64,000 nucleotides of DNA from Octopus bimaculoides. Its lineage: Eukaryota. The stretch is from assembly GCF_001194135.2 (NCBI RefSeq), contig NC_068987.1, positions 24,836,360 through 24,900,359 on the forward strand. The letters run 5' to 3'. Made by a program: the position numbers and the translations under genes. Shown here one piece after another: positions 14,113-60,585 of this stretch (positions are counted from its first letter, which is position 1; every line of letters begins with the position of its first letter). The notes under the pieces were generated by a model, which saw nothing but the letters and a program-made list of their open reading frames with translations, was not told where the DNA came from and did not search any database.

Positions 14113-14269
14113 TTACCCTATAATAGAAGAAGAAAATTTCTCTGTGTCTTCATTTGGTACTAATTGCGTCAGCACATTCTGTAAGCAATTTGTGGCTTCC
14201 AGTAAACCAAATTTTGCAAGGTATCTTCGTTTCCAACTCGTACGAAAGTTCTCAATCAGTTCCAGCAGT
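14113..14269 (-). CDS. Exon 22 (terminal coding): LLELIENFRTSWKRRYLAKFGLLEATNCLQNVLTQLVPNEDTEKFSSSIIG*
   Basis: tttatctttgcAG|A, then open frame to TAA at 14113-14115; 157 nt. Confidence 0.88.
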
Positions 14270-16941
14270 CTGCAAAGATAAAGGAAATTGAGAGGCATAA
14301 CACTGTTCCTTACTGGAAAGATTCCCATGATGAAGATTTTACAGATAAGGTCCCTATATTCAGAAACATTTTTGGCCCTTTTGGTACCAACCTGCCTGAA
14401 ACTGCACTTGGTCCTACAATATAAACTTCCAGTTTTAAAATGATCTAAATTAAAACCTTCCATCAAAATTTCATGTTAATTTATGTTCTAAAAACCTGAT
14501 TCATAATGACAAAATTGTTTTACTAAAATCTTAATTATTTCCAAAATTAATTAAAACAAAGGTAGCACATTTCAATAGGAATTTGGTAACAAAAGGGTTA
14601 GTGTGTACATCAGCAATATCATGCTCTCTGAGACAATGGAGTAATGTTATATTCATGGAAATTTTCTGCCTATTGTTCAAAAAATTTTTTTTGACTTAGT
14701 TAGAGGAAGGAAGGCAGAGGTTATGATACCCACTTAAAGGCTCCAAAAACTTGGGAGGAAAAGAAGAAAACATAAAATTATTTTCAGATCAGAAACATAG
14801 CCCAAATGTTTACACTTAAGGACCAGGTACCTGTATTAAAGCTGGTTACAGGTTAAGTCTACCACTCAGAAATAGAAACCATCCCTCCAATGGGCTTTCA
14901 CACAAGTTTCCTTTAACAAATTAGTAACTTGGGGTTGAACAGCAACAATAATTTCTTACATTTGGACAAAGTCACATATTTGTAGGAGAGATATATTCAG
15001 CTGAGTTGAATCCAGGACTATTACTGGTACTTATTTAATCAACTCTGGGCTATAACTGAATCCACTTCTGTAGGGTTTGAACTCAGAATGTAAAGACATG
15101 TGGCTAACTACTTGCAAAGTAATTAGACCAATCTCCTACAATTCAAGCCACCCAAGAAATAGCAATTTCTTATATTAGCATAAGGCCACAAATTTTGCAG
15201 ACCCCAGAACTTAACTAATAATTTATTTTATTAATCCCAGTAAGATAAAAGCAAAGTTAACATCAGTACAATATGAACCCAGAACCTAAACATCACAAGA
15301 TATATCATCTCATGCTCTAACAATTATGCCAGTTGAGTACAACCCTTAAAATATTAGCAAACTTTCACACGGAATAGGGGCCCCTTATTCTCTACAACAA
15401 AATAGTACATAAAACATGCAAAAACCTGTTAGCAAGATCTGTTTTTCCAGTAGCAGTCAAGTTTGTGATTCCAAGATTTACTATACGCAAGCCAGACAAG
15501 GGATCAGGGTTGCGACCAGCAGTCACCATAGCGCGTCCAATCCTGTCATGTTTTGAGAAACAGAAATTAACAGACAATGACAAGCAGGAAATGTGTTACA
15601 GTACAAGATAATATATTACCACAATATAAAACAACAGATGAAAACATTATGTAACATAGTACAGTACTTGTTTTTGTTGTCATTGTCATCATCATCATCA
15701 TCATTTTAAAATCCACTGTTTCATGTTCACATGGATTGGACAGAATTTGTCAGGGCAGATTTTCAACAATTGGATACCCTTCCTGTTGCCAACTGTCACC
15801 TGCTTCCAAGGTAAAATTTTTCTCATGACCAGACATGTTTAAACAGAAGATCAGAAATGAAGGGCAGCACTTGTATTCCAGTGACACTTATTTACAACTA
15901 TCAAGGCAATGACACTACCACACACCACACATGTTATACACACACACACACACGCATGCACACGCACACACAATGGGCTTCTTTCAGTTTCTGTCTATTA
16001 AATCCACTCACAACACTTTGGTTGGCCTGGACTATAGTAGAAGACACTTAACCAATGTGCTGCACAATGGGACTGAACCTGGAACCTTGTGGCTGGGAAG
16101 AAAACTTCTTAACACACAGCCATGCCAACAGTACTAGGTTCATAACTGCTGAAGCTTAGCTCTAGTTTCAAGGTGGATGAGAGATAAATCTCTCACTAGA
16201 TAGAAAACATGTTCGTTTCGGCTAATACTGACAAGCAATCTACTGTATAATGCTGGGAATAAATTAGGCTAACTGAAGTTCGATGAATTATGTATGCTAC
16301 TTAAAAACAAATGAAAATTTCTACAGTGAATTTGAAAACTAGACCTATGTTTGATATTTCAGTGTCATATTCATGAAGGTACTTTACTTCTACAAACTAT
16401 AGAATGTGTAACTAATTGCTGTTTGGGAAGTAATCACCAGCTTTCAACAATTATAAGCAGTTGAATTAGGAAGAACCATGCTGGGGTGGGGGTGGGGGGT
16501 GGGGGGTACTGATCCCATACACAAACAGCTTCCAAAAGATTTTCCAGTTGATTGTTACTCATTCATTGTACAACCTCTGGTTCAACAGATACGCTGTTTT
16601 GCTCTATCTGTGTCTAATTTATCACTGCCATGCTAAATTCAGCTACCCTGAAAATTAGCTACATGTATACCAGTTGTACAACTCTTTCTCTTGTCACACT
16701 ACCTTAGTGTGCATTTCCCCCTTTCCTATCAGATCCTGGAACTAATCACTTCTCCATACTTCTTACTTTTCAGAACATCAACCTTCTGGAAGTTCTTTCA
16801 CATGATTTTTTTCCTACAGACGTTTACATGCAGATGTTCAAAATGCACATCGACTCTGACAGTGTCACCAGATTCAGAAAGCCACTAACAGACATTGAGC
16901 ATAATTTCTTTTCTTTTGATTAAACATTATGAAACAAAAAC

Positions 16942-19900: not shown

Positions 19901-22900
19901 CAAAGCCAGAGCAATTTTGAGTGGGGTTAGTTTAGCTAATTATGTTGACCCCAGTACTTGACTGGTACTTTATTTTATCAACTCTGAAAGCAAATCTGAC
20001 TTTGATAGGATTTGAACTCAGAATGTAAAGAGCTGGAGTACATACTACAACACAGTTTTTTCAAACTCTAATGATTCTGCCAACAGACATTAATGGGTTA
20101 CAAAGCAATGCAAATAACGACTCAGACTATAGGTAAGTGGCTATTAGGCCAAGACAAAAATGGATCTCTCAGACACACTTCTTAAATTATGAACTGTTAT
20201 GATACTTGCCGTACTGCCAGGATCATCATATCTGTTGTGAGAAGCACCTCAGAAATGATTTCCTTTGATTGTGGGCAATTCAATTGGATGCTTGTTACAT
20301 CAGATTGGTGCTTCCGTAGAAGGCGGTTGGCTCGCTTCAATGAGATAACAGAAAACAAATTGTATTATAGTACTGAAATAGTTTTGAATTAAGAGACACA
20401 AAAATTATTATTTGTGTGTGTATTTGTCTATATATAACATACATAGAAGTGGATAACTGAATACAATTAATGAACAACGAAATTGAAACATAATCTTGTA
20501 TATGCTGAGGCACACCTATTTATTTAAAAGGGAAAATGTGAACAATTATATAGGTGCAGGCATGACTGTATAGTAAGAAGTTTGCTTCCCAACCACACAA
20601 GGCTTTGGTTGACAATAATATAAGGCTAAAATTCTTCAAGCTGGTGTCCCAGCATGGTCACAGTCTAATGACTGAAACAAGAAAAAAATAAAAAGATATA
20701 TAAAATGAGTTTTTTTTTCAGTCTTGATGTACCAAATCCACTCACAAGGCTTTGGTTGACATTGGAGTTATAGTAGAGTGTGTTTGCTCAATGCACCCTG
20801 CAATGGGACTGAACCCCATATCACATGGCTGGGAAGCAAACTTCTTGTATGTTGTTATTGTCTTTACGTTGTCACCATGTGGGCACAGCGATATTAGATT
20901 ACATCCCTCATTAACAAAATATCCAATTCAGTAGTGTAATGTGAAGAAGGGCACCTGAAGACAGAATATTGCTTCAAGATGACTCGATCAAGTCATGCAC
21001 TGGATCAAACCAGGAACAATATGTTAGAGCAGTGAACTTCTAAACCACAGAACCATGTCTGTGCTTGTATATAAACATCAAAATCTATAAGTATTGTACA
21101 TAGATAACTAAAGCAACATTATTTCTTAGACAGTACAGCCACAGCAAGAACTGTTCATCAAATGTCTTATTTAGCTTATTTTAGATTTTGTTATGCCATA
21201 GGTCAATTAAAATAGATTTGACAAAGACTATATATGATGTCAGCAATACATAAAGACTGAATGTAAAATCTAAAATTACAGGAATCTGATATGGGTCTGT
21301 GTTGGCAACAAGTAATACAAAGGAAATGTGGTAATAACTAAAATTAAATGCTGTTGTAATGAGGAAAGGCACTCTACAGGTGTTTCAAGCAGAGGCTCTT
21401 TACCAAGAAAGAGACAGGAAAAGTTCTGTTGGCTATTATAAAGACTTCATGGTAGTTATGGAGGAAGGAAATGGATATGTATGTAGGTTTGTGATTTCTA
21501 AGTAGAAGATATGTTAGTGTCTGGGTATATGGGTATGTGAGAATATCAAGGAAGGACGAGTACTGTATGTACCTATATACATAAGTCAGAGGGTAAGGAC
21601 TTGAGATAATATAAAGGTTGCTGATGCTACAGGACAGCATAAAAAGACTGAAGTGTTAAACTAATCCCTTACCTGTAGAATATCTGATGTTAAGTCTTCT
21701 AATCTTGTTTCATCAGGTCGTATAAGGAAACTAGTAAGAGTGGAGCCATTTTCACAAGGAAGAGAGGTTTGGTCATCATCTAAAAAAGAAGAGATAAAGA
21801 GGTCATCAAAAGAGCATATAGTAGGCATAAAAAAGGTGCAGTGGAGATGGATATAGTTGAATAACTGTACACAAGGAGAGAGAGCAGTGATATTTCTCTT
21901 TGGGATACATTGGAAAAAATGCAGAAAGTAGGCTAAATAAAATTTTTGAGGACTGCTGAAGTTGTAAAGAAAAAAACAAGTAAGATTTGTTGTTTTCAAT
22001 ATCCTAGTAAAATAATTATTTTTTCAGTATGTAAAGTAAATTCAGATATCCTAGTAAAGTGTGTGGGTGTGTAAGACTACCCTTACATAAAACTACTATC
22101 CACCACAAGTAGTTCTTTATCAAAGCTCTAACAAACCTGTTGCACAAAAAAGAAGAAAAAAGAAAAAAAGGGAATAATTAGAAGTATTGGAATCAGAAAT
22201 AAAATTACTAAACAATTTTCAAGAAGAGCAACAGCAGACAAATAACAAAAGCAAAAGGAGCAAAAAAGAAATGTAATAAACTTAATACAATTGGTGACAC
22301 TGTATTGATGAAAACAGTGAGTTGACAACACATCAAGACTTCATAATGCTGCTTTTCCCTTCCACGGAGGGAATAACAAATTAACACTCATTTGTCACTT
22401 GTGGTCACCATAAAATATTTTTGTTTCAATATAAGAATTTAATAGCATCAACCAAACAGGAACTAAAAATCACACACCATTATCTTTGACAGGAACTAGC
22501 TTCCTACCTGGTTTCTTTTGGGAACATCGATAGATGTAGGTCTCAATTCTTCCCAACTCAATGATAACTTGTCCAAAAACAGAAGAATCATCACGAAATA
22601 TATGTTTGTTCATAAGTTCTGCCAGATGGCTGTGAAGAAACTCCTGAAATAAGAATGAGATCTGAAATAAGAATGAGATCCATATAATCTGTAATAGGCA
22701 CAGGCATGGCTGTGCAGTGAGAAGCTTGCTTCTGAACTACATGGTTTTAGGTTCAGTCTTACTGCACGGCACCTTGGACAAGTGTCTTCTACTATAGTCT
22801 TGGGCTGACCAAACCCTTGTGAGTGGATTTGGTAGACAGAAACTGAAAGAAACTCATTGTATGTGTATGTGTGTGAGTGTGTTCATGTCTGTTTTTGTCC

Positions 22901-24841
22901 CTTCCCATCACCACTGCTTGAGATCCGATGCTGGTGTGTTTATGTCCCTGTAACTGAGTGGTTCAGCAAAAGAGACTGATGAAATAAGTACCAAGCTTAA
23001 CAAAAATAAGCCTAGGGGTTGATTGGTTTGACTAAACCACTTCAAGGTGGAGCCCCAGCATGGCTGCAGTCAAATGACTGAAACAAGTAAAAGATAAGAG
23101 ATAATAAAATGGTGATACTTCTACAATACACAAAATATTCAAACAATTTTTTATACAATTCCTAATAATAATTAGTCACAAGAATGTTACAGGAGTTTTA
23201 GATGTTGAGGGTCTCCCTCCACCGAGTAGAATAGGAATCAAAGGGGTCCATAGGTAAAAAATGGTTGAGAACCACTGATCTAGATCAATTCAATCAAGGT
23301 TGGCAATGTATGTTGTCCAAGGGAATGGTAAGGGCCACTATAACAAAGCACCATTGTCACTGCAGGTGGATTCAGATTGCAAGAAGTCACAATAGATACA
23401 GCATGGTATTTGATACTATGTTTAAAAAGGTCGCTAATGCATTACACTGGATTAATACTTAATTTTAGTGATACTGGACGGATGAAATGAGAAGATGACC
23501 GAGGCAGGGTTTGAACTCAGAACATCAAGAGCCAGGGTAAATACTATGAGACATTTTATCTAAAGCTCTTATGATTCTGCCAACCCACCACCTTAATCTG
23601 GAGGTTATGAACACCTTAAAACATTGATCCATTGAGAGACTTAGAATAATTAAATATTCTAATATTTAACACAAAATACTTTTGTCAGAGTGTAAAGCAA
23701 AAAGCCCCCCAAAAACAAAACAAAATAGTTGTTTTTAAAGAGACAATGCACAAAATGCTTGCAGAGAGATAGAATAAATGAGAAGGTAGAACCTACATTA
23801 ATTTTGTCTACATTAATGAGCCAACAAAAGTGATTTTACATAGCTATTCAAGCTACTACAAAAAGTAGCCAAATTGCCCTTATATCAAACCCTACTAACT
23901 TAAAAATGGAATAATACACTAATATAAACACTGATACACTTTGTCTGAGAAAAAGATAGAATAATCACTGTTGGAATATCTTTGATAACACTGTGTAACG
24001 TGAGTTTTGTCCTTAGGTAGCAACTGTTACTTCCTATTTGCTTAACCCAAGAAAGTATGAGAAATGACTAATAATTCTTCATACTTTGCTTTTGTTACAT
24101 TTATTCAAACCCCAAAGAATCCCTCTCAACACATGGCTGTGATGCTCCCCCACTACTCCTGCTTATGATCAGAGATGCACAAATTGTCAGCCACTAAGGG
24201 ACATGCTCAAGTGGTTATGGTCAAGCGATTGACAATCAGATCTATGGTATAGAGCAGAATATTTGCTGTAACGATATTTCTGCTTTAGCAACTCAGCACT
24301 GAATCTTTCTGAAATATAATGCAAGATAGGTCAGTTTCAAAACATTGATGTCCAGTCACAAAAGCAAAGTTTGAAGGGAATGATAGTCATTTCCTTCCTT
24401 TGATTTCTAAATAGAAGCAAATAGGAAATGACACTTAATAACCAAAGACAAAAAGAAGAAAAAAAAATTACACAGTGTAACAGTTTTGTTCAATCAAGGA
24501 TGATCTTGGGCTAAACAATAACAAATCTACAATAAATCAAATAAAACAGATGTCAAAACAAAGCTAAAAATAAATCAAATAAGATCAAGTGCCACAGTAA
24601 ATGCCTTGGAGAAGCTGTTATGATATTACTCTCTACTCTTTTTCTTGTTCCAGCCATTTGACTGCGGCCATGCTGGAGCATCGCCTTTAGTCGAGCAAAT
24701 CGACCCCGGGACTTATTCTTTGTAAGCCTAGTACTTATTCTATCAGTCTCTTTTGCCGAACTGCTAAGTTACGGGGACATTAAACACACCAGCATCGGCT
24801 GTCAAGCAATGCTAAGGGAACAAACACAGACACACAAACAT

Positions 24842-24885
<44 letters not shown>

Positions 24886-30600: not shown

Positions 30601-31009
30601 TTATTATGTGTGGGGTGCAGTTGAGTGAGAGACCAACAAAACTACTTGTAATACCAAAGAAGGTAAAGGTTATGGCAGCATTCACCAACTTAAACAAGAA
30701 GACTGTCTAGAGGAGTTGCAGGAGATTCCAAAGTCATCTGGAGGCTGTGGTTGAAGCCAATGGCTATTTTATTGAATAGATTTACTCTTTAGTATTTCAA
30801 GATATTTTTATGTAATTTTGGTAAATATAATTGTTAAAATGAGATGTCAGCGTTATTTTGGTTTTTGCGTAATTTAGATGACAGTTTATTCACCATACCC
30901 TGTATGTATGTATGTAGATGTATATATATNNNNNNNNNNNNNNNNNNNNNNNNNNNNNNNNNNNNNNNNNNNNNNNNNNNNNNNNNNNNNNNNNNNNNNN
31001 NNNNNNNNN

Positions 31010-48800: not shown

Positions 48801-51800
48801 TCATCATCATCGTTTACTCATAAGGTATCAAGGCTAGAATAAAAAGTACTTGCTCAAGGTGCTGCACAGTGCAACTGAACCTGAAACCATGTGGTTAAAA
48901 TGCATACTTTTTAACCACACAGACATGCCTGAATCCATGAAGATTTTTATCAGAAAAGTATATTATGTTTGGTTTAGGAAATTTAACTTTATGAAAGGGA
49001 AAGATGCTACAATAATAATTTTAATATTTCAATTCTTTGAGATATGCAGTTTATCTCAAAGGCTTCTCAAGAGTAAAAATGTTTTGAACCACTGGGCTAA
49101 GCCATTTCTCTGCCAAAAACATACCTACCCCACCATACCAATGCTGTTACCTATCTGCATGTATAAATCAAAAACGTAAAATTAAAACAGAACACCAAGG
49201 ATTCCGCGGGCGGTACACATGTTTCAAGCTTTATACACAAACAGTCGTTGCATCATTATATGATTGTGATATAATCTTGGGAAAGAATATATTTGCGGCT
49301 GAAGATAGCTTTATACCATCCTGTCTATCAATTATATACTCATATAATGATGTAACGACTGTTTGTGTATAAAGCTTGAAACACGTGTACTGCGGAATCC
49401 TTTGTGTTCTGTTTTAATTTTACATTTATTCTTTCACCTCGACCACTATCTGGCATATACAGGTGCTTACAATTATCAAGTATTACCTCTAAAATTTGCT
49501 TTATCTACATGTATATGTATCTGCCAGTGAAGAGTCTGCATGAAGGTCCTCTCCATCTTAACCTTGAGTAGATAGGCAGGCAAATAGGCAGACATGCAAG
49601 TGAAAGTGAGCAGGATAGTCAATGAAATAGAATGACAGAAAAAAAAAGATAGGTAAACAGATAACTATTAGATAGATATTAGACAGATAAGTATCAGATA
49701 GAAACTGTTAGTTACACAGACAAATAAATAGACTTAAATAGGCAGACATGTGGAGGAAGAGAGAGAAAGAGAAATAGAGAGAAAAGGGAGAGAGACAGAC
49801 AAATAGCCAGAGAGAGGGGGGGAGAGAGAGACAGATAAATAACCTGACACAGAGATAGAAAGAGAGAAAAAAAATCACCAAATCTGGACTTACTAAGAAT
49901 GTCTTGGAATAGCTTTTTACTAAGTTTAGTTGGAGGGTTCTGCAAGAGGCTGAGTAGAATTGCATTACGATCTGCAAGATCAAGAGCGGATTTGCCTATA
50001 TTGTCTCTGTAAGGAATAAAAAGGGCAGGAAAGTACATAGATAAATAAAAACTGTTGTAATTAATAGATTATGTGGTTGTGTGGGTGTACATATGGCTGG
50101 GTGCAAGTGTAGGTATGTGAATGGCTAGATGTATATATCTGTATGGTTGGATGTAAGTGCATGGCTGGGTGCAAATGTGCAGTAGAATGCATGTGTATGA
50201 GTGGTTGGATGCATGTGTGCGTGCATGTGTGGTTGGATGTATGTGTATGGTTGAGTGAATGAATATGTATGTGTAGCTAGGAGTAAGTGTGTGGTTACGT
50301 GCATATGGGTTTTGTGTGGCTCAATTTATGTAGAAATATGTAGTTGTTGTTGAACAGCAAGTCAGCTCTGATGGAGTGGACCTATGATCGAAAACACTCC
50401 AGTCATGGCCATCCCACTCTTTCAGACATTAGTGTATCTAAGACTATATTATTCAATGTATCCTTTTAAGATACAGAAATGTTATTTGAGAAAGATTTTT
50501 GGCAACTATTTTCAATGATGTGAGTGAGCGTGTTGAATCTCCCTCCCTATATATATGTGGTTATTGTTGTTTAGCACCAGGACAGCCTTGTTTAAGTAAG
50601 CTTTGGACATATCATCTAAGATGCACACAAACACATATATATCTATCAAAACCACTCACAAGATTTTGGTCAGCCTGCATCTATAGTGGAACACATTTGC
50701 CCAAGGTGCTATGCAGTGGGACTGAACTTGGAATAATGTGGCTGGGAAACAAACTTCTCAAAACACAGCCATGCTTGCACCTCTGTTTCATAAAATTTAA
50801 GAAGACTGCAAACTTTTATGAACTTGTCCAAAACCACACAGAAGAAAGAGACCACTATACCGAAGGTAACTGGGCAGAAAAAATTTACAATCAATAAATG
50901 TCTTAGAACAACCAGTCACTCATCTGGGAAGGCCTTGAAATCAATGTTACCAACTAGGGAGTATGTGTGACCCAGTAATAATAAAAAAAACTCAAAGGAG
51001 GTCTGCAACGAAATAATTTTACTCAACACTTTGCAAGTGAATCAGTGGAGGCCAAGATGCGTCTTATTTACTTGACAATTTATGCACCACATTGCAGAAA
51101 TCACAATGTAAGTATATCTGAAAGGATAGTCTTACACTGTTGTACCGTTGAATTACAAATAATGCTCATCTGTTATGTTTGGGTGACCCTATAACTTCCA
51201 ATAGTACAACTGTATTCGTCTTTGCTTAGGAAAAATGACTAAATTGTGGGTGTGAAGTCCCCATGAAGGGGTCTTTGTAACTTCTAAGAAGAAATTTTAG
51301 AAATATTACTTTATTTGTGTGTAANNNNNNNNNNNNNNNNNNNNNNNNNNNNNNNNNNNNNNNNNNNNNNNNNNNNNNNNNNNNNNNNNNNNNNNNNNNN
51401 NNNNNNNNNNNNNNNNNNNNNNNNNNNNNNNNNNNNNNNNNNNNNNNNNNNNNNNNNNNNNNNNNNNNNNNNNNNNNNNNNNNNNNNNNNNNNNNNNNNN
51501 NNNNNNNNNNNNNNNNNNNNNNNNNNNNNNNNNNNNNNNNNNNNNNNNNNNNNNNNNNNNNNNNNNNNNNNNNNNNNNNNNNNNNNNNNNNNNNNNNNNN
51601 NNNNNNNNNNNNNNNNNNNNNNNNNNNNNNNNNNNNNNNNNNNNNNNNNNNNNNNNNNNNNNNNNNNNNNNNNNNNNNNNNNNNNNNNNNNNNNNNNNNN
51701 NNNNNNNNNNNNNNNNNNNNNNNNNNNNNNNNNNNNNNNNNNNNNNNNNNNNNNNNNNNNNNNNNNNNNNNNNNNNNNNNNNNNNNNNNNNNNNNNNNNN

Positions 51801-53736
51801 NNNNNNNNNNNNNNNNNNNNNNNNNNNNNNNNNNNNNTATTATAAGGTTTTTAAACTTTTAAATTTTCATATTCAAAAGAGACAGAGACTTCAAATTCGA
51901 TATATCGATTTATTCACCACTCTATGTTAACATTTCTGTGCCAAACTTATCCAGTGACTGGTCCGTTGGATTTAGACATTTAGATATATCGAATTTGAAG
52001 TCTCTGTCTCTTTTGAATATGAAAATTTAAAAGTTTAAAAACCTTATAATATATATATATATATATACACACACACATCTATATATATATACATGTATAT
52101 GGATACATTTGTGCAGATATATATATATGCATGTATGTATATATGTGAGAGTATAGTTTCACTGTACTATTATCTACTTATTCCATAATGTTTTAACCTT
52201 GTTTACTCAGGGAGCAATCAGTCTTAATGGTTGACAAAAGATGTCAACATCAGCATTGCTTTGCTCAAGCAACGACAAGGGAAATATCAATATTTGTGTA
52301 AAAACACAAACACAAATTTACAAATATGGCCTAATACAGTGCCCAAGGTTCTGTGCAGTGGGCCTGAACTTCAAACCACATGGTTGTGATGTGAACTTCA
52401 TAATTACACAATTAAATAAGTGGCACAACAGAATGTGTAGAAACTAGTGCTAGCCTCTGCCTGCAAATAACACTGTAACAAAATAAATTTTTTTTTGTCT
52501 TTGGCTACTAAGTTTTATTTCCTATTTACTTCTATCTAGAAATCAAAGAAAACTACTACTATCCTCTTTAAACTTTACTTTTGCGACCAGGACATCAATG
52601 TTTTGAAACTAATCTATTTTCTATTGCATTTCAAACAGATTCAGCACTGAGTTGCCGAAGCAGAGATATTGCTATACTCTCTTTAAAAATTTTTTTTTTT
52701 TACTTGTTTCAGTCATTTGACTGCGGCCATGCTGGAGCACCACCTTTAGTCGAGCAAATCGACCCCAGGACTTATTCTTTGGAAGCCTAGTACTTATTCT
52801 ATCGGTCTCTTTTGCCGAACCGCTAAGTTACGGGGACGTAAACACACCAGCATCGGTTGTCAAGCGATGTTGGGGGGGACAGGGGGACAAACACAGACAC
52901 ACAAACATATACATATATATACATACATATATACGACGGGCTTCTTTTAGTTTCCGTCTACTAAATCCACTCACAAGCTTTGGTCAGCCCGAGGCTATAG
53001 TAGAAGACACTTGCCCAAGGTGCCACACAGTGGGACTGAACCCAGAACCATGTGGTTGGTAAGCAAGCTACTTACCACACAGCCACCCCCGCGCCTATAG
53101 CTAATATTCTGCTCAATACCACAGATTTGCTTGTCAGTTACTTGACCTTAACCACTTGAGCATGTGGTCAGCCTTAGTGGCTGACAATATGTGCATCTCT
53201 GATCATGAGCAGGAGTAGTGGGGGAGCATCATAGCCATGTATTAAGAGGGATTCTTTGGGGTTTGAATAAATGTAACAAAAGCAAAATTTGAAGGAAATA
53301 TTAGCCATTTTCATACTTTCTAGGGGTAAGCAAATAGGAAATAACACTTGCTACCCGAGGACAAAAATTGTGTTACACAGTGTAATTAATTAATTAATTC
53401 AGATAGTTCACAAAATAGGAATAAGTTATTTTTCTGGAAAACTAATTTATTTACACATTAGAAAGTTTTTGCTTGAATAAGTTATGTTCTTACCCTCTTT
53501 TAATCTTTAGTGTTGGATCAGCTTTATGGATTAGCAGTTCTTCCACAATCTCAATGTTCCCTCTTGAGACAGCCTCATGAAGTGGAGTGCAACCGTCCAT
53601 GTTGACTGCATTAACATCAGCACCACGCACTAGAAATTACATAACAGAAATAAGTCGAGAGTAGCATACTGAAGAGAAATTATATATAGCAAAGAGTTAG
53701 TGCTTTGAGTCATTCATACATGTGTGTATGTGTGTA

Positions 53737-54037: not shown

Positions 54038-56676
54038 AAATAAAAATAAATATGTTATCATCAGTAAAATCTTACAGCAGAGACATTGTATCATGTCACG
54101 TGAGGCATAACAAGAAGCCCAATGTAAAGGTGTGTTTTGGCTTTCACTGCTGTCCTTCAGGTTTACATCAAGTCCAGAAGCCAAGAGCTGGCAGACACGC
54201 CCCATACTGAAGAAAAATCAAACAGTGTAATTAGGATTACAATGCTAATAGGTATTTTCTTTAAAATATCTCAGTGGAATAAAATATTAATATTCATTTT
54301 AACATTGCTTTTGGTGAGATCAAAGATATATTCGTCATATACACAGCTGTAAAGAAGTGTGAGCAAAAAGAATCTCAAGGGCATATAGAGACCCTATTCT
54401 TACATATAGTTGTGTCACCTGGAATATCAACAGACAAGTGGAAAAGCTATCAATGTTGTAGAGATTTAGTTCTTTAAATGCAGGCATGTTGAAGGTGTCT
54501 TATGTGGATAGAGTGACAAATATTGAGGGCCTTAGATGAACAAAATTCCACAGGAAGCTTCTCAATGACATAAGGCGACAACAGGCTCAATTCATTGGAA
54601 AGCAAATAAGAAGAGACAACCTTAAGCACTTGAAGACAACAGAAAAGCTACAAGGAAGAAATTGGGGAAGACAGAGAGAGAAGATACTCAATGGTGTTAC
54701 TAGCTAGCATCAGAATAACTGATGCAGCAACATGCCAAGTTGTATACAGGACAGGAGAGCACAAAAGGTTCCTGGTTGGCTTGTCAAATAAAGAACACTA
54801 CCTTTCTTAAGCATTTAAAAACTGATATTTTTCTCAGAGCCGATTATAAAACTCAGATGATTTGGATATTTTTGACATTTGTAAAATTGCTGGAATAAAT
54901 AGCTTATTTCCTTTTTATCAATACATATAACAATGAAGAATAACTTTATCAAACAAACGCTTGGTTCTCAAAGAGAAATCCTATGGAGTAATATTTATCC
55001 ACAGTGCACTATAGTTCAGGCTGCCTGAAGTAGACATGCATTAATCAGTAGAATCCCCAAAAAAGTAGTTATGTTCTGCTTTAGTAGAAAGTAATATTAA
55101 TAGTTCAAACAGTGGAATGTGTTTTATGCTGTGAGAAAGAAGAAAAGTTTCATGCAGAATCCTCTGTAAAAGATAGATGTGCTTGAAAGATTATTATTAT
55201 TATTATTATTATTATTAGTAGTAGTAGTAGAATAAAGATGTCTAGCTATAAAATCACCAGTATAACAGTTTTAATTCCCTTTTACATATGGCTATATCAG
55301 TGTTTCAGGTCTTTTAAAAATCGGGTATTCTCACTTGGGCTGCCCAGTTAGGGTTGATCAAACTCTGTATTGTGTCCAGTTAGCACTACTCCATTCATGG
55401 TTCACACACCCCTGATTCACAGTTTCTTTGATGCAACTGCTATTGTCTTGGTATTCAGGCTGTTTTTGTTTTTTGGTATTTGAGCAGTACGTGTAATTCT
55501 ACATACCACAGTTCAACCAACCATTGGAAAGAAATACTATATCATACAAGAACACTGTTTGAGATAAACTAGCATCTTATCCAGGTGATAGTTGACTCAT
55601 ACTAAGAAACATAAGCACTATTCTATATAAACTTACGAAATTTACATAAAAATACTGGCTCCTACAATATGGCAAATATTCATATGTAGCAAAACAAACC
55701 CTTCTCATTTATGCTATGGTTAAACAGCTTAAGAAACATTAAAACAAAATAAAATGGGATGAAACAAGTGTGTGTTGACCAGTGATTTCCAAAGTGGGTA
55801 GTGTCACACCCTGAGGACAAAAAAATTGGCTGACAGCAGAATGAAAGGTAGAAAGTGGAGGTCAAAGAAGCTAAGATACTAGGAACTGGTAAAGGGTTAC
55901 TTGATCATATGGAGGTTCAGCAGAATTTGTTAATTTTTATAGTGCATGTCTGTGACTGATGAGAGCAAAGTGCATACAATACCAGCCTCTATGACAAACA
56001 ATATGGAATATATAAGGGTGATTGATGGATGTATGGAGTTAAAGATGACAGATACATTTATGGGACCTTAGCAATTTGGAACACCTTGAGAATCACTGGC
56101 ACAGCTTACACTTGGTTACTGTTAGACAAGAGAAAATGAAATCAAAAATGTGAGAATATTGTAACTAACTTGGAATGTGCAGTGGCTTGCAGAAGTTCTT
56201 CATTGAAGACAATTTTCACTTTATCTGACTCAGCAAGGTCCAGAGGGATTCGTTGATTTTTGTTGTGTATGCCAGGATCTGCACCAGCAGAGAGCAAAGT
56301 GCGTACAATGTCAGCCTCTCCCAGCTATAATCAAACAGAAGAAGCCTGTTATAAGAAGCTAATTATTTTTAAGAGTGAGTTATGGCTGTGAATTTGACAG
56401 AAACAGAAATGTTTTTATTTCCTTAAATATTTTGGAGTTTTTACACCCTTCCAGGGCTGCTAAAATAAGTATCAGTAATATATATTCTTTTCTATATTTA
56501 AGAGATGAGGAATTATGTACATTATTTACATTTGATGGATATTTCTCCTCATCTTGTTGTTAACACGTTTCAGTTGATATACCCTCCAGCCTTCATCAGG
56601 TGTCTTGGGGAAATTTTGAACCTGGGTTTTCATTCCTAAGGTATTTTTCGATGTTGTTGTTGTTGTTATTATTATC

Positions 56677-56707: not shown

Positions 56708-58585
56708 TCACTGCTTGGAATCGAACTAGGAATCTTGGGGTTAGTAGCCTGCTCTCTTAACCACTACACCATATGCCTGTGGGCAATTATGGAATGAATT
56801 TTAGGGCTTTTAAATCTAATATTTTCCTATCCTTCCTTAATACTGGTTCCCATATGCTATTCATATCTGTACTCGGTCTGGTTAGGAGGATGTGTCCTAG
56901 CATATGTGCTGCTTCTTTTAGTTTTCATATTTTCCAGTGGTGTTCTCTGTCTATTATTTTAACTTCATCCCACAGAGGGAGGTAGTCTCCATTTTTCCAT
57001 ACAAGATCAGCTGTACCCGATTTATCAATATCTCCTCATGTCACAGCTTTGTGATGTTCCTCTACCCTTATTTTGAGGAGTGACATGTTTTGCCTTTGTA
57101 TTACCTACCACAGCTGCATGGGATGGAATACATGCAGTTTTTGGTCATATTCTCTGGAGTAACAGGAAATAAGGTGCTTTGTGTAAGAACACAACACACA
57201 GCCTGGATTGGGAATTGAACTCACACCCTCATGATTGTAAGCCCAATGCTCTAACCACTGAGCCATATGCCTTCACTATTTTATATATATACTGGGTCAT
57301 CCTATAAATAATGCAGTTTTTTATACTTCTTTTATTTTTCAAAATTAAGATAAAGTTTTTTTTTTGTTATCTAAAATGTACTCTTCTTCATTTTCTACAA
57401 TGCTCTTCCATCTACCTGGTAGACTTGTAAGGCCCCTCTTTTAAAATTCACTTGTCCGTNNNNNNNNNNNNNNNNNNNNNNNNNNNNNNNNNNNNNNNNN
57501 NNNNNNNNNNNNNNNNNNNNNNNNNNNNNNNNNNNNNNNNNNNNNNNNNNNNNNNNNNNNNNNNNNNNNNNNNNNNNNNNNNNNNNNNNNNNNNNNNNNN
57601 NNNNNNNNNNNNNNNNNNNNNNNNNNNNNNNNNNNNNNNNNNNNNNNNNNNNCTGCACTGTATGTGGCTGAGCATTATCCTGTTGGAAGAACACTTCTTG
57701 TCTTGAAACCAAAGATGGTCATTTTTCTTCTAGTGCTGACTTAAGCTGCTCGCAGTAAATCTCTTTTGTTATTGTTTGGTTTGAGTTTAAAAGTTCAAAG
57801 TGGACTAAACCTTTCATATCCCACCAAACAGACAACAACACCTTATGTGGGTGAAGACCTTCTTTAGCCTGGGGTGCCAGTGTTTCTCTTTTCCCTACTC
57901 ACTGTCTTCGGTACTTGACATTTTTATAGAGAACCCATTTCTCGTCACCAGTCACTATTCAATTCAAAAAAGGTTAATTCGTGAGATGTGACAGCAAAGA
58001 AGAGCAGACATTCACTCTCTGCACGTGATTAGACTTGGAACGTTTGTGAGGAACCCATTGACGCAATTTGCTGACTTTTCTGATGGCATGCAGGTGTCGA
58101 TGAATAATTGAATGACTGAATCCAAGCTTCTCTGCTAGTTCCTCAACAGTTACAATGGGATTTTGTTCCACCAGGGTTTGCAGGACATCCTCGTTGAGCT
58201 CTACAAATCTTCCAGGATGAGGCTCATCTTCTAGGCTCTAGTTTCCAGCTTGGAATTTCTGGAACCACCATTGACACTGACTTACACTTATTGTCTGATC
58301 CCCATAAAGTGCATTAATGTTCCTCGCACTTTCCGACGTTTTGTTGTCTGTATTGAACTCATAGAGCAAAATATGCCAAATATTCTCCTTTGTCACTTCC
58401 GTTATAACTTTGAAAGAATAACTGTTTCAATCAAACTGCACGCTCCAAAACTTGCACTAAGAAGAAAGTAAAATTACTACCTGCTTTTATAGCAAGTTGA
58501 TGCAGGTAGTATATCTCGTTCTCCTCTGACTTTTAGTTCATGCAATTGAAAAAACCGCATTATTTATGGGATAACCCAATATATG

Positions 58586-58653
<68 letters not shown>

Positions 58654-60585
58654 CATTCATTATCATTTTAATGTCTACTTTTTCATGCTTGCATGGGTCA
58701 GATAAAATTTTGCTGGTAAAAAGCACCTGGTCCACTCTGAAGTATTTGGCATTAGGAAGGGAATCCAGTTGTGAAAAAGCCATGCCAAAGTAGACAGTAG
58801 AGGTTGGTGCAGTCCTCTGGCTCACCAACTCCTGTCAAACTGTCCATCCCATGGTAGCATAGAAGATGATGATGATGTTGATGATATACAAGCACACACT
58901 CATGTACTTCAGCTAGTCCCAAAAACAGACCCTTCTCCTCAGGGTCAGAAAATACAGCACACAACAGCTGCTGATACAGTACACAACACAAGTGAGACCC
59001 ACAAGGAAGTACTACTGCTACTGTGCACACAAGCATCATGAACAGCATCCAGTGAAGAGCTATTTGACTGACTAATCTTCAATCACTAACAGTCTATAAC
59101 CCCTGGTCCACAGGCATGCTATCTCCATTTTCTTTTCTTTTTGGAATCTCAACTATAATGGTCTCTGGATAGTGTCATACTTCCATTATTCAGGTATCCC
59201 CAGCTTGCATGTCTTTCCACCTCCTGTAATCCTTGTTGCATCCAACCCACCTACTCTAGTCCTGCACTATCCACTATGCTCAGTTATTTTCCCCCAAAGC
59301 ATTGTCTCTCTGGAATCTTCTTGTTCAGCAGGTGTTCACCTGCAACAGTTTAAGTGGAACATAAACAACATCAAGCTCACTAGTCTTGGAGAGCCTGTGA
59401 AGATCATGGGCACTCTTCCAAACTCAGTAAGTTAAAGATAAGTTATAATATTAATTCTATGATATTTGTTCTGAACCATTTTACAGACACTCTCTTGTCA
59501 ACTCACACTGTCAAAAATACAGTGAGTAGCCCACTGAAAATCTGTCCACTAATTGTGATATTTATCATCATCACTGTTCAATGTTCACTTTTCTAAGTTT
59601 GCATGAGTCAGACAGAGTTAACTGAGTCAGACTTTCTCTAGCTGGATGCTCTTTCTGTCATCAACCCTCAATTGTTTCTAAGCAAGGCAAAATTTCTCCA
59701 GGACATGTTTATGCAGAATATTAGAAATGACAGAAACTGCTTGTATGATACTGCTGCTCATTGTCATGTAGTGTCAAAACAAGACACAAACATACACATA
59801 TTCACACATACAAACACATACATACATTGATACATAAATCATGGCCTTTTTTCAGTTTCTGTCTAGCAAATCCACTCACACATGGCCTAGAGATATAGTA
59901 GAAGACACTTGCCCAAGGTGTCAGAGTGGGACTGAACCTAAAACTGTGTGGTCGGAAAGCCAACTTTTTAACCACCACATTCACTTTTGGAATACATTTC
60001 CAGGAGGCTGAAATAAATATTAAAAAAAAAAAAAAAAAAAAATCAAGGATCTAAGCTTTGAAACTATTCTGTCGGGTCAGCATGTTTCAAATACTCTTAT
60101 CTATAAAGTATGCAGAACACTGGCTCACAAGAAGTCGTAGACTCCCAATAAGTTCTTTGGCATGGGATTGCTCCACAACAAAAACAAAATCATGGTGGAA
60201 GGAAGGGTCATTGAGAACATTTCAGCTGATAACTTTTCGGGTCAATAATACATAATCAAAATCAATACATACTTAAACACGCACACGCAGCTGCCTTAGC
60301 AGCATTGTAGGCCCCTGGGCACTATAGTATATATTCACTGACAGCAAACCACAGTATAAACAGATCAGAATTGGTCTCCTTAGATCCATGAGATCCCTGC
60401 GCCTATGCATTAAGATGACACTGCACACACACTATACATGCATATGTACATACATATATGTGTGTGTGTGTATGTGTGTATGTATATATATATATGAAAA
60501 CCTACCATTGTAGCAAGGTGAAGAAGTGTTCCATCATCAGAACATGATTCATTTAAAACTGTTTGCAAATCTTTCACTTCTGAAC
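14113..60585 (-). CDS. Spliced 22-exon gene (5'-partial): ankyrin repeats + GH20 domain-2-like region + GH20-like catalytic barrel lacking catalytic residues; about 957 aa visible
   Basis: Manual exon reconstruction. Every exon is bounded by AG and GT (one GC), all intron phases match, total 2876 nt = 2 + 958 codons ending TAA at 14113. Ankyrin motifs [30 protein letters not shown]. GH20-like motifs LLWPRPQ, YRGVLLDVSKGRVP, MKFNQIHLY, LIPAVDV, CPGTAAWNS. Confidence 0.9.
15426..15542 (-). CDS. Exon 21: IGRAMVTAGRNPDPLSGLRIVNLGITNLTATGKTDLAN(R)
   Basis: catgacAG|G ... AAC AG|GTtttt (weak donor); phase 2 to 2; 117 nt; overlaps track ORF 15392-15583. Confidence 0.82.
18633..19522. mobile_element. 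Non-autonomous DNA transposon (MITE): about 280-bp TIRs starting GG, exact 8-bp TSD GGTAAAAA, telomere-like core; Merlin-like
   Basis: Left end GGATCTTTTCCCTTTGAACGGCACATCGAG matches the reverse complement of the right end; GGTAAAAA at 18625-18632 and 19523-19530. Confidence 0.85.
20210..20334 (-). CDS. Exon 20: RANRLLRKHQSDVTSIQLNCPQSKEIISEVLLTTDMMILAV(R); GC donor
   Basis: tgttatctcattgaAG|CGA ... GTA CG|GCaagt; phase 0 to 2; 125 nt; only the GC donor keeps frame with exon 21. Confidence 0.8.
21673..21779 (-). CDS. Exon 19: DDQTSLPCENGSTLTSFLIRPDETRLEDLTSDILQ
   Basis: tcttcttttttAG|AT ... CAG|GTaagg; phase 1 to 0; 107 nt. Confidence 0.87.
22508..22643 (-). CDS. Exon 18: EFLHSHLAELMNKHIFRDDSSVFGQVIIELGRIETYIYRCSQKKP(D)
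   Basis: ctcattcttatttcAG|GAG ... CCA G|GTagga; phase 0 to 1; 136 nt; acceptor is tandemly duplicated (see findings). Confidence 0.88.
22694..23100 (+). mobile_element. SINE family A copy (plus orientation)
   Basis: Reverse-complement match to 24628-25133. Confidence 0.8.
24628..25133 (-). mobile_element. tRNA-derived SINE family A, full-length copy
   Basis: Head (minus) ataggcgcaggagtGGCTGTttaGtaagtagc...GGTTCAGTCCC with A/B-box-like motifs; central (CA)/(TA) repeat; near-identical copies elsewhere. Confidence 0.85.
25225..25453 (-). CDS. Exon 17: FGFFICPGTAAWNSLAGFPEAAVANIFNAAKCASSQSGLGLLVCHWSGSSFLTHSPFCWPGFVVTAGLAWNKDIHW
   Basis: ttttgattttAG|G ... TGG|GTaagt; phase 2 to 0; 229 nt; CPGT..WNS and G.L...W motifs of HEXDC/bacterial-type GH20 barrels. 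Confidence 0.92.
26736..27567 (-). mobile_element. Deleted maT (DD37D) Tc1/mariner copy, same family as 29612-30902, opposite orientation
   Basis: Ends match both ends of the 29612-30902 element; reverse strand encodes PPNFPDYNLLDYYVWVQL and GRPYV remnants; TA-flanked. Confidence 0.85.
28180..28226 (-). CDS. Exon 16: ATHNFVPHCKRLSEY(G)
   Basis: ttttcttctttcatAG|GCC ... TAT GG|GTaagt; phase 0 to 2; 47 nt. Confidence 0.85.
29324..29525 (-). CDS. Exon 15: FINVGSRLTSFLLEYPDDDTLSIADASKFLPIKDKTLLISGSTLHDVKQHLIQRLPPHLMFGEYGTQ
   Basis: tctcatctacAG|C ... CAG|GTaaga; phase 2 to 0; 202 nt; overlaps track ORF 29201-29488. Confidence 0.88.
29612..30902 (+). mobile_element. maT-family (DD37D) Tc1/mariner transposon, full length but frameshifted
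   Basis: TA-flanked CAGGGT...ACCCTG termini; ORF 30263-30628 has WQQD-SAP...WPPNSPDCKPL-DY with exactly 37 residues between the 2nd and 3rd Asp. Confidence 0.9.
32030..32349 (+). mobile_element. Helitron-type 3' terminus (non-autonomous; 5' extent hidden by gap)
   Basis: CCCG-agcaacgc-CGGG hairpin at 32322-32337, then tgcctctgCTAG|T, same as the 9591 terminus. Confidence 0.6.
32480..34060 (-). mobile_element. Decayed RTE-BovB-like LINE fragments (RT core, endonuclease N-terminus, C-terminus)
   Basis: Minus-strand remnants GISLL and FHDG (RT, ~33960-33600); TWSIQTLQD...DVTAIAETRL...YTFFWKG (EN, ~33430-33260); PKQMILYSEI...NWEKVAE...WRQAC (C-terminus, ORF 32513-32818). Confidence 0.8.
34378..34524 (-). 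CDS. Exon 14: ELLEIDKFCMDRGMQLIPAVDVHPSVQFEDLPFLQCVFYDYISHFTNS(D)
   Basis: acctattgcAG|T ... TCA GA|GTaagt; phase 2 to 2; 147 nt; matches GH20 'E...i..yc..rgi.liP.id'. Confidence 0.9.
35452..35845 (+). mobile_element. tRNA-derived SINE family C ending in (AAC)n; related 3' halves at ~36630-36925 and 47945-48240
   Basis: A box TGGCCCAGTGG and B box GGTTTCGATTCCC in the head; shared body gaatatccccgagaactacgttaaggg...gagcaggctgttccgttgat. Confidence 0.75.
36238..36628 (-). mobile_element. SINE family A copy
   Basis: High identity to 24628-25133 and 52695-53098. Confidence 0.85.
38024..38088 (-). CDS. Exon 13: IHLYTRFRYQTSSTWQLCYSC(S)
   Basis: attttctcttcAG|ATA ... TGT AG|GTgtgt; phase 0 to 2; 65 nt. 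Confidence 0.85.
38824..38934. mobile_element. Small MITE-like hairpin, about 32-bp TIRs atttggctgctatttctagca...
   Basis: Inverted arms visible; the same terminal motif occurs singly at ~18345 and ~37525. Confidence 0.5.
39394..39444 (-). CDS. Exon 12: ETLKNMLDNIAFMKFNQ
   Basis: tttgtctgttacAG|GAA ... CAG|GTacca; 51 nt; matches GH20 'L..xiD.MA..K.N'. Confidence 0.9.
40086..40157 (-). CDS. Exon 11: ITDSPSLPYRGVLLDVSKGRVPNI, GH20 barrel first strand
   Basis: ttttctttgcttAG|ATT ... ATA|GTaagt; 72 nt; matches GH20 signature 'I.D.P...YRG.xLD.SR'. Confidence 0.92.
41910..42020 (-). CDS. Exon 10: VKILAHDIQSLSYAIITLSQLFNLYKTESGISIPLLE
   Basis: ctcttttcttttgtAG|GTC ... GAA|GTaagt; 111 nt; resembles GH20 domain-2 'I.A....G.FYA..TL.QL'. 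Confidence 0.9.
42384..43078 (-). mobile_element. Three consecutive SINE family B copies separated by (AAT)n
   Basis: Copies at ~42384-42595, 42610-42830, 42880-43078. Confidence 0.8.
43313..43505 (+). mobile_element. Fragment of R4/Dong-like (restriction-like endonuclease) LINE
   Basis: Open frame DETIDHLISGCPILTPNKYKNHHDRVKQYLHWKI matches the CCHC-to-RHD/RLE region of RLE-clade non-LTR elements. Confidence 0.7.
43690..44050 (+). mobile_element. RTE-type LINE internal fragment (EN-RT linker)
   Basis: Remnants AEKRGLRM / NDKGILALNDIEKKEV / RLLYEENA*EK with stops. Confidence 0.5.
44557..44741 (-). CDS. Exon 9: IHSVAQVWNCRKFMFTSMGIETIINLQSPAYEYNTTCILCHVSSRLCVEKASYKIIIQTFQ
   Basis: tttaaaaacAG|GC ... 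CAG|GTaaac; phase 1 to 0; 185 nt. Confidence 0.85.
45423..45582 (-). CDS. Exon 8: KELECLPMFPKTVVTEEQLSLLWPRPQSIVQKEGNHFIPDDVLHIYLSTMSDI(S), start of GH20 domain-2-like region
   Basis: ttacttcctacAG|AAA ... ATT A|GTaagt; 160 nt; LWPxPQ is the typical start of GH20 domain 2. Confidence 0.88.
46064..46252 (-). CDS. Exon 7: SHLNTKGLIPFRQTTNPVPKHKSGKFSQRKLCHQHQTSPKEPSKGQTSQFEIILNFLLKLGEN, linker
   Basis: gatcatAG|AGT ... AAT|GTaggt; phase 0 to 0; 189 nt. The donor is ambiguous: G|GTatgg 4 nt further on could pair with an alternative AG at 45572. Confidence 0.65.
47395..47555 (-). CDS. Exon 6: EDFALSESVIQNSVTNATEIIDTVTESPLLEYPVVSIPPTSSGSKIQELSNQI, S/T/P-rich linker
   Basis: ttttttcttgttcAG|CT ... 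ATT|GTaagt; phase 1 to 0; 161 nt; open frame that bridges exons 5 and 7. Confidence 0.8.
49172..49427. repeat. Inverted repeat, about 90-bp arms
   Basis: cacatgtttcaagctttatacacaaacagtcgttgcatcattata vs tataatgatgtaacgactgtttgtgtataaagcttgaaacacgtg. Confidence 0.8.
49894..50006 (-). CDS. Exon 5: [37 protein letters not shown](T), ankyrin C-cap
   Basis: tttttattccttacAG|A ... CTT A|GTaagt; phase 2 to 1; 113 nt. Confidence 0.85.
51838..52050. repeat. Perfect inverted repeat, about 70-bp arms
   Basis: 51838-51907 is the exact reverse complement of 51982-52050; it abuts an N-gap. Confidence 0.85.
52695..53098 (-). mobile_element. SINE family A copy; partial copies also at ~6085-6270, 15870-16135, 28740-29010, 50560-50780, 59820-59980, 61329-61478, 63517-63670
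   Basis: Shared blocks gactgcggccatgctggagcacc..., ccaaatccactcacaaggctttggtc..., gacacttgcccaaggtgcc. Confidence 0.85.
53494..53629 (-). CDS. Exon 4: [44 protein letters not shown](G), ankyrin
   Basis: atttctAG|TG ... AGA GG|GTaag; phase 1 to 2; 136 nt; near-consensus ankyrin repeat. Confidence 0.93.
54076..54206 (-). CDS. Exon 3: MGRVCQLLASGLDVNLKDSSESQNTPLHWASCYASRDMIQCLC(L), ankyrin
   Basis: tttttcttcAG|T ... TGC T|GTaag; phase 2 to 1; 131 nt; overlaps track ORF 53945-54205. Confidence 0.92.
54385..54770 (+). mobile_element. RTE-type LINE 3' fragment
   Basis: PILTYSCVTW...MLKVSYVDRVTN...RKLLNDIRRQQ..FIG...RRD.LKHL...K.QGR..GRQREKIL with in-frame stops. Confidence 0.75.
56170..56324 (-). 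CDS. Exon 2: LGEADIVRTLLSAGADPGIHNKNQRIPLDLAESDKVKIVFNEELLQATAHS(N), ankyrin
   Basis: gattatAG|CTG ... TCC AA|GTtagt; phase 0 to 2; 155 nt; ankyrin motif LLSAGADP. Confidence 0.9.
56500..57090 (-). mobile_element. Penelope-like element 3' end: GIY-YIG endonuclease C-terminus + pLTR with degenerate hammerhead-ribozyme core
   Basis: Minus-strand RVEEHHKAV..GDIDKSGTADLVW...WDEVKIIDREHHWKI*KLKEAAHM; then CTGATGA (56599-56593) and GAAAC (56571-56567). Confidence 0.7.
57292..58579 (-). mobile_element. mariner (DD34D-type) transposon, about 1.29 kb, TA TSD, decayed, with internal gap
   Basis: Matching TIRs (c/t)tgggt(c/t)atc-c-ataaataatgc-gtttttt; minus-strand remnants TVEELAEKLGFSHSII.RHL...WVPH and FQQDNAQPH. 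Confidence 0.88.
60506..60585 (-). CDS. Exon 1 (first visible): (G)SEVKDLQTVLNESCSDDGTLLHLATM, start of ankyrin repeat
   Basis: Acceptor ttttttacaacAG, donor ATG|GTaggt; phase 1 in, phase 0 out; 80 nt. Confidence 0.85.

Follow-up and report, generated by a model that had tools for sequence, protein, structure and literature searches.

An ankyrin-GH20 gene of Octopus bimaculoides and the predicted loss of catalysis in its hexosaminidase-like module

The locus and its gene

The window analysed here -- the whole stretch of 64,000 nt of Octopus bimaculoides DNA (assembly GCF_001194135.2, NC_068987.1 24,836,360-24,900,359), whose numbering is used for all gene positions -- carries on its minus strand, from 60585 down to 14113, 21 exons of a gene which joins ankyrin repeats to a GH20 hexosaminidase-like module with a replaced catalytic pair. 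An earlier sequence-only reading had taken this gene to be hidden and undescribed; it has been found to correspond to the RefSeq model LOC115214018 of O. sinensis, and dozens of invertebrate genomes have predicted orthologues. The sequence of the window is rich in AT (GC 0.37), with many microsatellites and interspersed repeats and seven runs of N.

The 2687 nt of coding sequence in the window comprise 894 codons and a stop (TAA at 14115-14113), with no in-frame stops, and the introns, 19 GT-AG and one GC-AG, all have compatible phases. The 894-amino acid (aa) translation aligns without gaps with residues 33-926 of the Octopus sinensis RefSeq "uncharacterized protein LOC115214018 isoform X1", at 94.4% identity, and is 67% identical to a 923 aa protein of Argonauta hians. 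All 21 exons have equal length and the same splice dinucleotides at the O. sinensis genomic locus. In O. sinensis the coding sequence starts (aa 1-32) in an exon 11.2 kb upstream of the 60585 exon, which by the nucleotide alignment falls about 7.5 kb past the end of the window; the region 60586-64000 is intron 1 in its entirety, and the window holds exons 2-22 of the 22 coding exons of a gene of about 58 kb. The 60585 exon begins in phase at an acceptor, with no ATG, leaving the frame in the window open at its 5' end. The open frame and compatible phases described earlier thus stand, though for 21 exons rather than 22, the first being outside. The stretch of the gene in the window is real and intact.

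Initial exon calls were made with our own dynamic programme, based on codon usage and splice-site scores, and were refined by tblastn mapping of the A. hians protein and then of the O. sinensis protein. The programme had 14 of the 21 exons exact, and had placed one boundary wrongly in each of exons 17 and 20. Homologue mapping added the exon at 44741-44557 and a 47-nt exon at 28226-28180, and resolved a phase break after 20210 as a GC-AG intron; its donor (gcaagt, at 20208-20209) is also present in O. sinensis (L002 63148-63149), and gene finders restricted to GT donors will lose the frame there. Several candidates were discarded along the way. Five exons called by the programme (44741-44722, 36973-36902, 30418-30381, 27236-27200 and 18060-18017) were replaced after the two proteins had been mapped; 43635-43529, considered as a missing GH20b exon, was dropped when O. 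sinensis placed the real exon elsewhere; an ATG exon candidate at 63952-63889 lies in what is intron 1 by comparison with O. sinensis; and an exon supposed to be missing between 20206 and 15542 gave way to the GC-AG intron. An Rfam scan of the window gave no match at gathering thresholds.

In the direction of transcription, the ankyrin region begins with exon 2 (60506-60585, with a phase 2 acceptor start; it matches O. sinensis L002 21311-21390), which holds the start of repeat 1. Exon 3 (56170-56324) carries repeats 1-2, exons 4 (54076-54206; NTPLHWA...) and 5 (53494-53629; GCTPLHEAV...) each a further repeat, and exon 6 (49894-50006) a capping repeat and the start of the linker. The linker continues through exon 7 (47395-47555), disordered and fast-evolving, with 17 of its 161 nt differing from O. 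sinensis, and ends in exon 8 (45423-45582), which also starts the GH20b domain (LLWPRPQ). Exon 9 (44557-44741), one of the two recovered through homologue mapping, encodes the middle of GH20b, and exon 10 (41910-42020) its end (VKILAHD...YAIITLSQL).

The barrel follows with strand beta1 in exon 11 (40086-40157; YRGVLLDVSKGRVP), helix alpha1 through MKFNQ in exon 12 (39394-39444), and strand beta2 in exon 13 (38024-38088; IHLYTRF), where Arg-Phe replaces the Glu-His of active relatives (LYxEHT); the motif MKFNQIHLY straddles the splice junction 39394|38088. Exon 14 (34378-34524) encodes alpha2, beta3 and alpha3, and lacks the NQNSFGH motif and the loop of about 40 aa seen in active relatives. 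Exon 15 (29324-29525) contains beta4 with the dead motif INVGSRL (Arg-Leu for Asp-Glu), and beta5 and beta6, where pocket Trp and Tyr residues are replaced; exon 16 (28180-28226; ATHNFVPHCKRLSEY) was detected by homologue mapping only. Exon 17 (25225-25453), from which the query that found the family was taken, encodes beta7 (CPGTAAWNS, with its Trp kept), beta8 (CHWSG, with Trp kept and Asp replaced by Gly) and alpha8. The C-terminal helical domain, or domain III, starts in exon 18 (22508-22643) and runs through exons 19 (21673-21779), 20 (20210-20334, followed by the GC-AG intron) and 21 (15426-15542, with the TDLAN motif), while exon 22 (14113-14269) is the last coding exon. The peptide motifs listed in the sequence-only reading were all found where it had put them, on the minus strand.

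Five of the assembly gaps lie within the gene span, all of them in introns (57460-57652, 51325-51837, 31794-32029, 30930-31009 and 25782-26704); since the protein is collinear with that of O. sinensis and gapless against it, they conceal no exon.

Protein architecture and structural relatives

The full protein, of about 926 aa, consists of a helical cap, four to five ankyrin repeats, a linker of about 75 aa and a three-domain GH20 module made up of a GH20b domain, a (beta/alpha)8 barrel and a helical domain. Pfam readily detects the ankyrin repeats of the octopus protein (Ank at E=1.7e-23 over three stretches, Ank_2 at 6.6e-21), while GH20 (PF00728) reaches 20.7 bits against a cut-off of 22.3 and GH20b (PF02838) 20.8 bits against 26.1; it is because of these shortfalls that public records give only ankyrin domains for it, though PF02838 is precomputed on many orthologues. 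A domain scan had been expected to return all three; it did so for the ankyrins, and the GH20 parts emerged instead from comparison with solved structures. A single-sequence phmmer search of the PDB found several solved GH20 enzymes at about 1e-6. A full-length profile was swamped by ankyrin proteins, and the C-terminal part alone was therefore used: a ten-sequence profile of the non-ankyrin part matched GH20 at 1e-21, its positions 8-140 aligning with the N-terminal domain of 6yhh and 7dup, the GH20b domain which precedes the barrel. The GH20 homology of the non-ankyrin part is solid, and the splicing, the Pfam ankyrin matches and the PDB profile together bear out the proposal that a single multi-exon gene encodes the ankyrin repeats, the GH20b domain and the GH20 barrel.

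An AlphaFold monomer model of the O. sinensis protein, made with a 29-sequence alignment, has a mean pLDDT of 83.9 and shows a helical cap, ankyrin repeats (paired helices at 52-70, 92-119, 136-154, 169-187 and 206-221), an alpha/beta domain, eight barrel strands and a long helical C-terminal domain, with helices from about residue 692 to 925. The linker, put at about 120 aa in the sequence-only reading, is shorter in the model, where pLDDT falls below 50 over residues 229-304, or about 75 aa. Foldseek comparison of the model with the PDB, as had been anticipated, placed GH20 structures on top: Streptococcus gordonii GcnA and S. pneumoniae GH20C, at E of about 1e-16 and target-normalised TM scores of 0.63-0.66, with alignments of about 650 columns that extend over domain III. 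All of the top 50 were GH20 or GH84 enzymes. The N-terminus, as seen in the O. sinensis orthologue, is hydrophilic, helical and not signal-peptide-like, which fits the cytosolic protein of the earlier reading; because of this, the protein is probably cytosolic or nuclear.

GcnA and GH20C are GH20 enzymes with a third, helical domain, and the placing of GH20b before the barrel has been called the 'model A' architecture (PMC4449183). The octopus protein shares with them (2EPN for GcnA, 5A6J and 5AC4 for GH20C) the order GH20b, barrel and helical domain III, though they lack the ankyrin repeats and linker and are only about 11-13% identical to it. GcnA is a homodimer formed via domain III, the end of which reaches the active site of the partner (PMC4449183). 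The GH20 subfamily 1 enzymes (HEXD/HEXDC, Caenorhabditis elegans HEX-2 to HEX-5 and T. suis HEX-2, 8QK1), of about 500-620 aa, have an intact Asp-Glu pair with proven activity and neither GH20b nor ankyrins; T. suis HEX-2 has a helical bundle after the barrel, and its closest solved structure is GH20C (PMC11308363). HEXD is a nucleocytoplasmic protein from which the octopus protein differs in having GH20b and ankyrins before the barrel and in lacking Asp-Glu. A presumed resemblance in motifs between our family and HEXD is not used as evidence here. The subfamily 2 enzymes HEXA/HEXB and insect FDL/OfHex1 also have GH20b and a barrel, and gave significant matches over the end of GH20b and beta1-beta3; unlike the octopus protein, however, they carry signal peptides, reach the lysosome or are secreted, and have an intact active site, no ankyrins and no domain III.

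Distribution of the family and transcript evidence

When the exon at 25225-25452 was searched against a set of 1.84 billion representative proteins, 400 relatives came up at E<=0.001, some of them full-length and about 900-950 aa long. (Exon fragments strung together into a 242-aa query gave no protein match, owing to a word-index limit rather than to a lack of relatives.) The search for the architecture across invertebrates that the sequence-only reading had proposed was thus fruitful, with orthologues of that length in many phyla: ankyrin repeats leading into GH20 are predicted in molluscs, annelids, nemerteans, a priapulid, insects, chelicerates, crustaceans and filarial nematodes, and also in echinoderms, hemichordates, amphioxus, stony corals and three choanoflagellates. 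The family was not seen among hits from vertebrates, flies (including Drosophila) or C. elegans, an impression taken from the hit lists only. Database names for the orthologues include 'uncharacterized protein', 'Beta-hexosaminidase bacterial type N-terminal domain-containing protein', 'beta-N-acetylhexosaminidase' and, spuriously, 'Tankyrase'.

Full-length identity across phyla is 32-48%, with many invariant positions, among them W-P-x-P at the start of GH20b, an Arg-Gly in beta1, the Thr of CPGT and T-D-x-A-N of domain III. The last of these (encoded by exon 21; T870, D871, A873 and N874 of P0151) occurs in every animal and choanoflagellate member and in none of the ankyrin-less relatives. 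The three choanoflagellates (Salpingoeca kvevrii, S. urceolata and Diaphanoeca grandis, from EukProt predictions) have the full architecture, including a 'GRTDIV' N-terminal cap and TDLAN as in octopus. Outside the ankyrin-bearing family, the closest sequence relatives are uncharacterised, mostly metagenomic GH20 proteins that lack ankyrin repeats and TDLAN and measure about 600-640 aa; one is from a slime mould and one is named 'glycoside hydrolase' (from a Planctomycetota metagenome-assembled genome). These contain LDxSRDK, NQNSFGH, NVGxDE, FWGD, EWGYE, CPGTSSWNS and DWGDNGH, alike in order and spacing, and keep every catalytic and pocket residue.

A Logan contig of 3,424 nt (SRR8281673) has an unbroken open reading frame (ORF) of 923 aa from the ankyrins to the C-terminus and belongs to an orthologue cluster that includes Sepia (Acanthosepion) pharaonis. 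As the octopus gene is spread over 22 exons and 58 kb, this contig is most simply an mRNA, and a single ankyrin-GH20 transcript is present in a related cephalopod.

No paper was found in the literature on an ankyrin-GH20 protein, on such a pseudoenzyme or on six locus names of the family, in keeping with the earlier statement that no characterised gene with this architecture could be named. The gene itself is already a public, uncharacterised prediction; what seems to be new is the interpretation of the family, in which an ancient fusion of ankyrins to GH20 lost its catalysis in animals.

Selection

Compared with O. sinensis, divergence is about 3.7% in exons and about 6-14% in those blocks of the introns that align. 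The Nei-Gojobori dN/dS is 0.37 overall, on the small count of 99 substitutions in total; by region it is 0.40 for the ankyrin repeats, 0.22 for GH20b, 0.29 for the barrel, 0.23 for domain III and about 1.4 for the linker. The gene is conserved under purifying selection and is not decaying.

These data bear directly on the idea that neighbouring ankyrin and GH20-like genes have been misjoined here, or that the locus is a decaying pseudogene. The position of exon 1 beyond the window, the five assembly gaps in the span and the octopus GH20 and GH20b scores under the Pfam gathering cut-offs could all be read that way. Against this, the arrangement recurs at about 900-950 aa from choanoflagellates to amphioxus, and this recurrence across phyla excludes that two genes merely came to lie side by side by chance; the 923-aa ORF is unbroken on a transcript-like contig of 3.4 kb; and the 2687 nt are free of stops and frameshifts, with splice sites conserved in the two octopus species and the low dN/dS just given. 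An artefact of either kind is hardly credible.

The active site and the sugar pocket

The window protein was aligned with 28 animal sequences, three from choanoflagellates and 15 ankyrin-less relatives of about 600-675 aa (mostly unnamed and metagenomic, with one named Planctomycetota and one slime mould), 47 sequences in all. Active GH20 enzymes carry the catalytic motif His/Asn-x-Gly-x-Asp-Glu where beta4 ends. In the profile-structure alignment, octopus 'NVGSRL' (family consensus 'vGPRLS') falls onto 'HIGGDE' and 'HLGGDE' of 6yhh and 7dup, with the acetamido-polarising Asp replaced by Arg and the acid/base Glu by Leu. The Asp-Glu pair is absent from all 29 animal sequences (28 from databases and the window model), and is found in 15 of 15 ankyrin-less relatives and two of three choanoflagellates. 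The coral motif has Asp-Leu; the other animal sequences have neither Asp nor Glu there.

The rest of the pocket was mapped onto GcnA and GH20C by sequence alignment; the active relatives align with GcnA through beta4-beta8. In the -1 subsite of GH20C, Asp222 and Tyr308 hold the acetamido group and Asp375 holds O4/O6 (PMC11308363). Seven of the nine pocket residues compared are replaced in the octopus protein, namely the catalytic pair D222 and E223 (by R and L) and five others: the substrate-binding R94 of beta1 by K (in exon 11), W266 of beta5 by S (Cys in most bilaterians), W306 and Y308 of beta6 by Y and T (the latter Phe or Val elsewhere) and D375 of beta8 by G. Only the equivalents of W339 (beta7) and W373 (beta8) are kept. 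The loop of about 40 residues after beta3, with its FGH motif, is deleted in bilaterians, and is likewise gone when octopus is compared with GcnA and GH20C. On this alignment, the octopus GH20 module is best described as a pseudoenzyme, predicted to be incapable of the substrate-assisted GH20 mechanism, and canonical binding of N-acetylhexosamine (HexNAc) has probably been lost as well.

The choanoflagellate proteins look like active enzymes: two of the three have HVGLDE, and the FGH loop and the pocket Trp, Tyr and Asp are kept. The Pfam GH20 score falls from 63 bits for a bacterial ankyrin-less relative through 59.6 in a choanoflagellate and 42.9 in coral to 20.7 in octopus. The coral orthologue (Pocillopora and Stylophora; P0117/P0316) has HVGLDL, with the Asp kept and the Glu lost; it also keeps the beta5 Trp (LQFWAN) and scores over the Pfam GH20 threshold. 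Such an intermediate state suggests a stepwise loss of the active site during animal evolution.

The sequence-only reading had proposed an intracellular sensor of N-acetylglucosamine or N-acetylgalactosamine (GlcNAc/GalNAc), or a scaffold. The sensor is now disfavoured: the catalytic Asp-Glu has become Arg-Leu, two pocket Trp are replaced, and the idea is weakened because the residues lost are those which would hold the acetamido group and O4/O6. On this idea the dead barrel would still bind GlcNAc/GalNAc, for instance on O-GlcNAc-modified proteins, as a lectin-like reader coupled to partners by the ankyrins. The model shows an intact barrel fold with good confidence, the W339 and W373 equivalents and the beta7 and beta8 motifs are kept from bacteria to octopus, and a protein with no signal-peptide-like N-terminus could meet nucleocytoplasmic glycoproteins. 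However, the equivalents of Asp222, Tyr308 and Asp375 are Arg, Thr/Phe/Val and Gly, two further Trp are replaced, the post-beta3 FGH loop of about 40 aa is deleted, and the replaced positions vary among phyla, unlike those of a maintained binding site. We regard a HexNAc reader of this kind as unlikely.

Cephalopods have Phe and Ser (AGFPEA in exon 17, near 25400, and TLLISG in exon 15) at two positions where most other bilaterians have Cys (AGCPEA, and LC at beta5), a change specific to their lineage near what was the active site.

The protein might instead still be an enzyme, with another mechanism or substrate and newly recruited residues in a remodelled pocket. GPRLSS, AGCPEAA and DWSGxGH are well conserved in bilaterians, and the folded domains are under purifying selection. 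But no acidic pair takes the place of Asp-Glu, and the Arg at the former Asp position, though common, is variable (V, A, N, Q, T and K occur), which argues against new catalysis; cephalopods lack two of the Cys found in most other bilaterians (ISG for LCG at beta5, AGFPEA for AGCPEA); and neither Pfam nor Foldseek pointed to a different catalytic family. That the protein has a new enzymatic activity is, on balance, very improbable.

Proposed role

The account that we favour, and consider fairly probable, is that this LOC115214018 orthologue encodes a pseudo-hexosaminidase which acts as a non-catalytic scaffold or adaptor, a plausible role. The folded, dead-enzyme GH20 body would serve as the scaffold or adaptor, and may be dimeric via domain III in the manner of GcnA; the ankyrin arm or arms, on flexible linkers, would be presented to partner proteins.

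Several points weigh against this account or narrow it. Active T. suis HEX-2 also has Lys in place of Arg94 (PMC11308363), and that change alone is not diagnostic of a dead enzyme. The variability of the Arg at the former Asp site, as seen in the alignment, would be no proof of pure scaffolding. The barrel motifs CPGTAAWNS, DWSGxGH, SWPGF and AGLxWN are strongly conserved, making a remodelled ligand pocket possible. Dimerisation is suggested by the likeness in fold to GcnA only. Finally, the frame is intact from exon 2 to exon 22, and with exon 1 beyond the window this does not extend to the whole gene.

In a further possibility, the ankyrin-GH20 protein would have begun as a cytosolic hexosaminidase, still active, in the ancestor that choanoflagellates share with animals, and in animals would have been converted stepwise, through Asp-Leu as in coral to Arg-Leu as in bilaterians, into an adaptor sensing a ligand or glycoprotein; its pocket would read a new ligand, or HexNAc in a non-canonical way, and signal via the ankyrin arm. 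We think this rather unlikely, though if it were true the protein would be a previously unrecognised component of intracellular signalling.

Repeats and other features of the window

The intron between exons 2 and 3 contains, at 57722-58426 on the minus strand and adjoining the gap at 57460-57652, a stop-broken remnant of a mariner/Mos1-type transposase; its open stretches, when joined, match Pfam HTH_48 at 1.3e-17 and Transposase_1 at 2.5e-16. At 26862-27427 (minus strand), abutting the gap at 25782-26704, are open stretches reading '...QQDSAPCHTSRRTQLWL...WPPNFPDYNLLDYYVW...', which may represent the C-terminal portion of a DDE transposase of the Tc1/mariner type; they have no Pfam match at E<=0.01. 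A 139-aa ORF ('...IRSITRDMGVSEFLIRQTVLEDI...') on the plus strand at 29830-30249, within the intron immediately preceding exon 15, appears to resemble the beginning of a transposase, where its helix-turn-helix lies.

A dispersed repeat of about 385 bp, like a short interspersed element (SINE), is found at 52698-53089 and 36242-36626, with similar-looking copies near 24556-25137 and 15950-16133. The copies at 52698 and 36242 each match two places in O. sinensis (L002 47320-47705 and 61121-61487) at 89-90%, and the translated pattern 'GRRKLKEA...' of this repeat recurs in many introns; no tRNA or other RNA family was identified in it by Rfam.

The N runs lie at 5652-6084, 25782-26704, 30930-31009, 31794-32029, 51325-51837, 57460-57652 and 61508-61852. 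Where their flanks are visible, these are microsatellites (with translations such as YIYIYI, CVCVCV and HTHTHT), and it was probably simple repeats, not features related to the gene, that interrupted the assembly.

Significance

The family has probably escaped study for three reasons: it was not seen among vertebrate, Drosophila or C. elegans hits; its barrel, in bilaterians, falls under Pfam thresholds; and at least one GH20 phylogeny excluded sequences longer than 750 aa (PMC11308363), a filter that would have taken out the ankyrin-GH20 family. For annotation, it follows that these genes should not carry the names 'beta-N-acetylhexosaminidase' or 'tankyrase', as some records do. Dead glycosidases reused for binding or scaffolding are rare and informative, and here a family of about 920 aa, spanning choanoflagellates to most invertebrate phyla, exhibits an apparently stepwise catalytic loss, with the active site intact in choanoflagellates, half lost in coral and fully lost in bilaterians.

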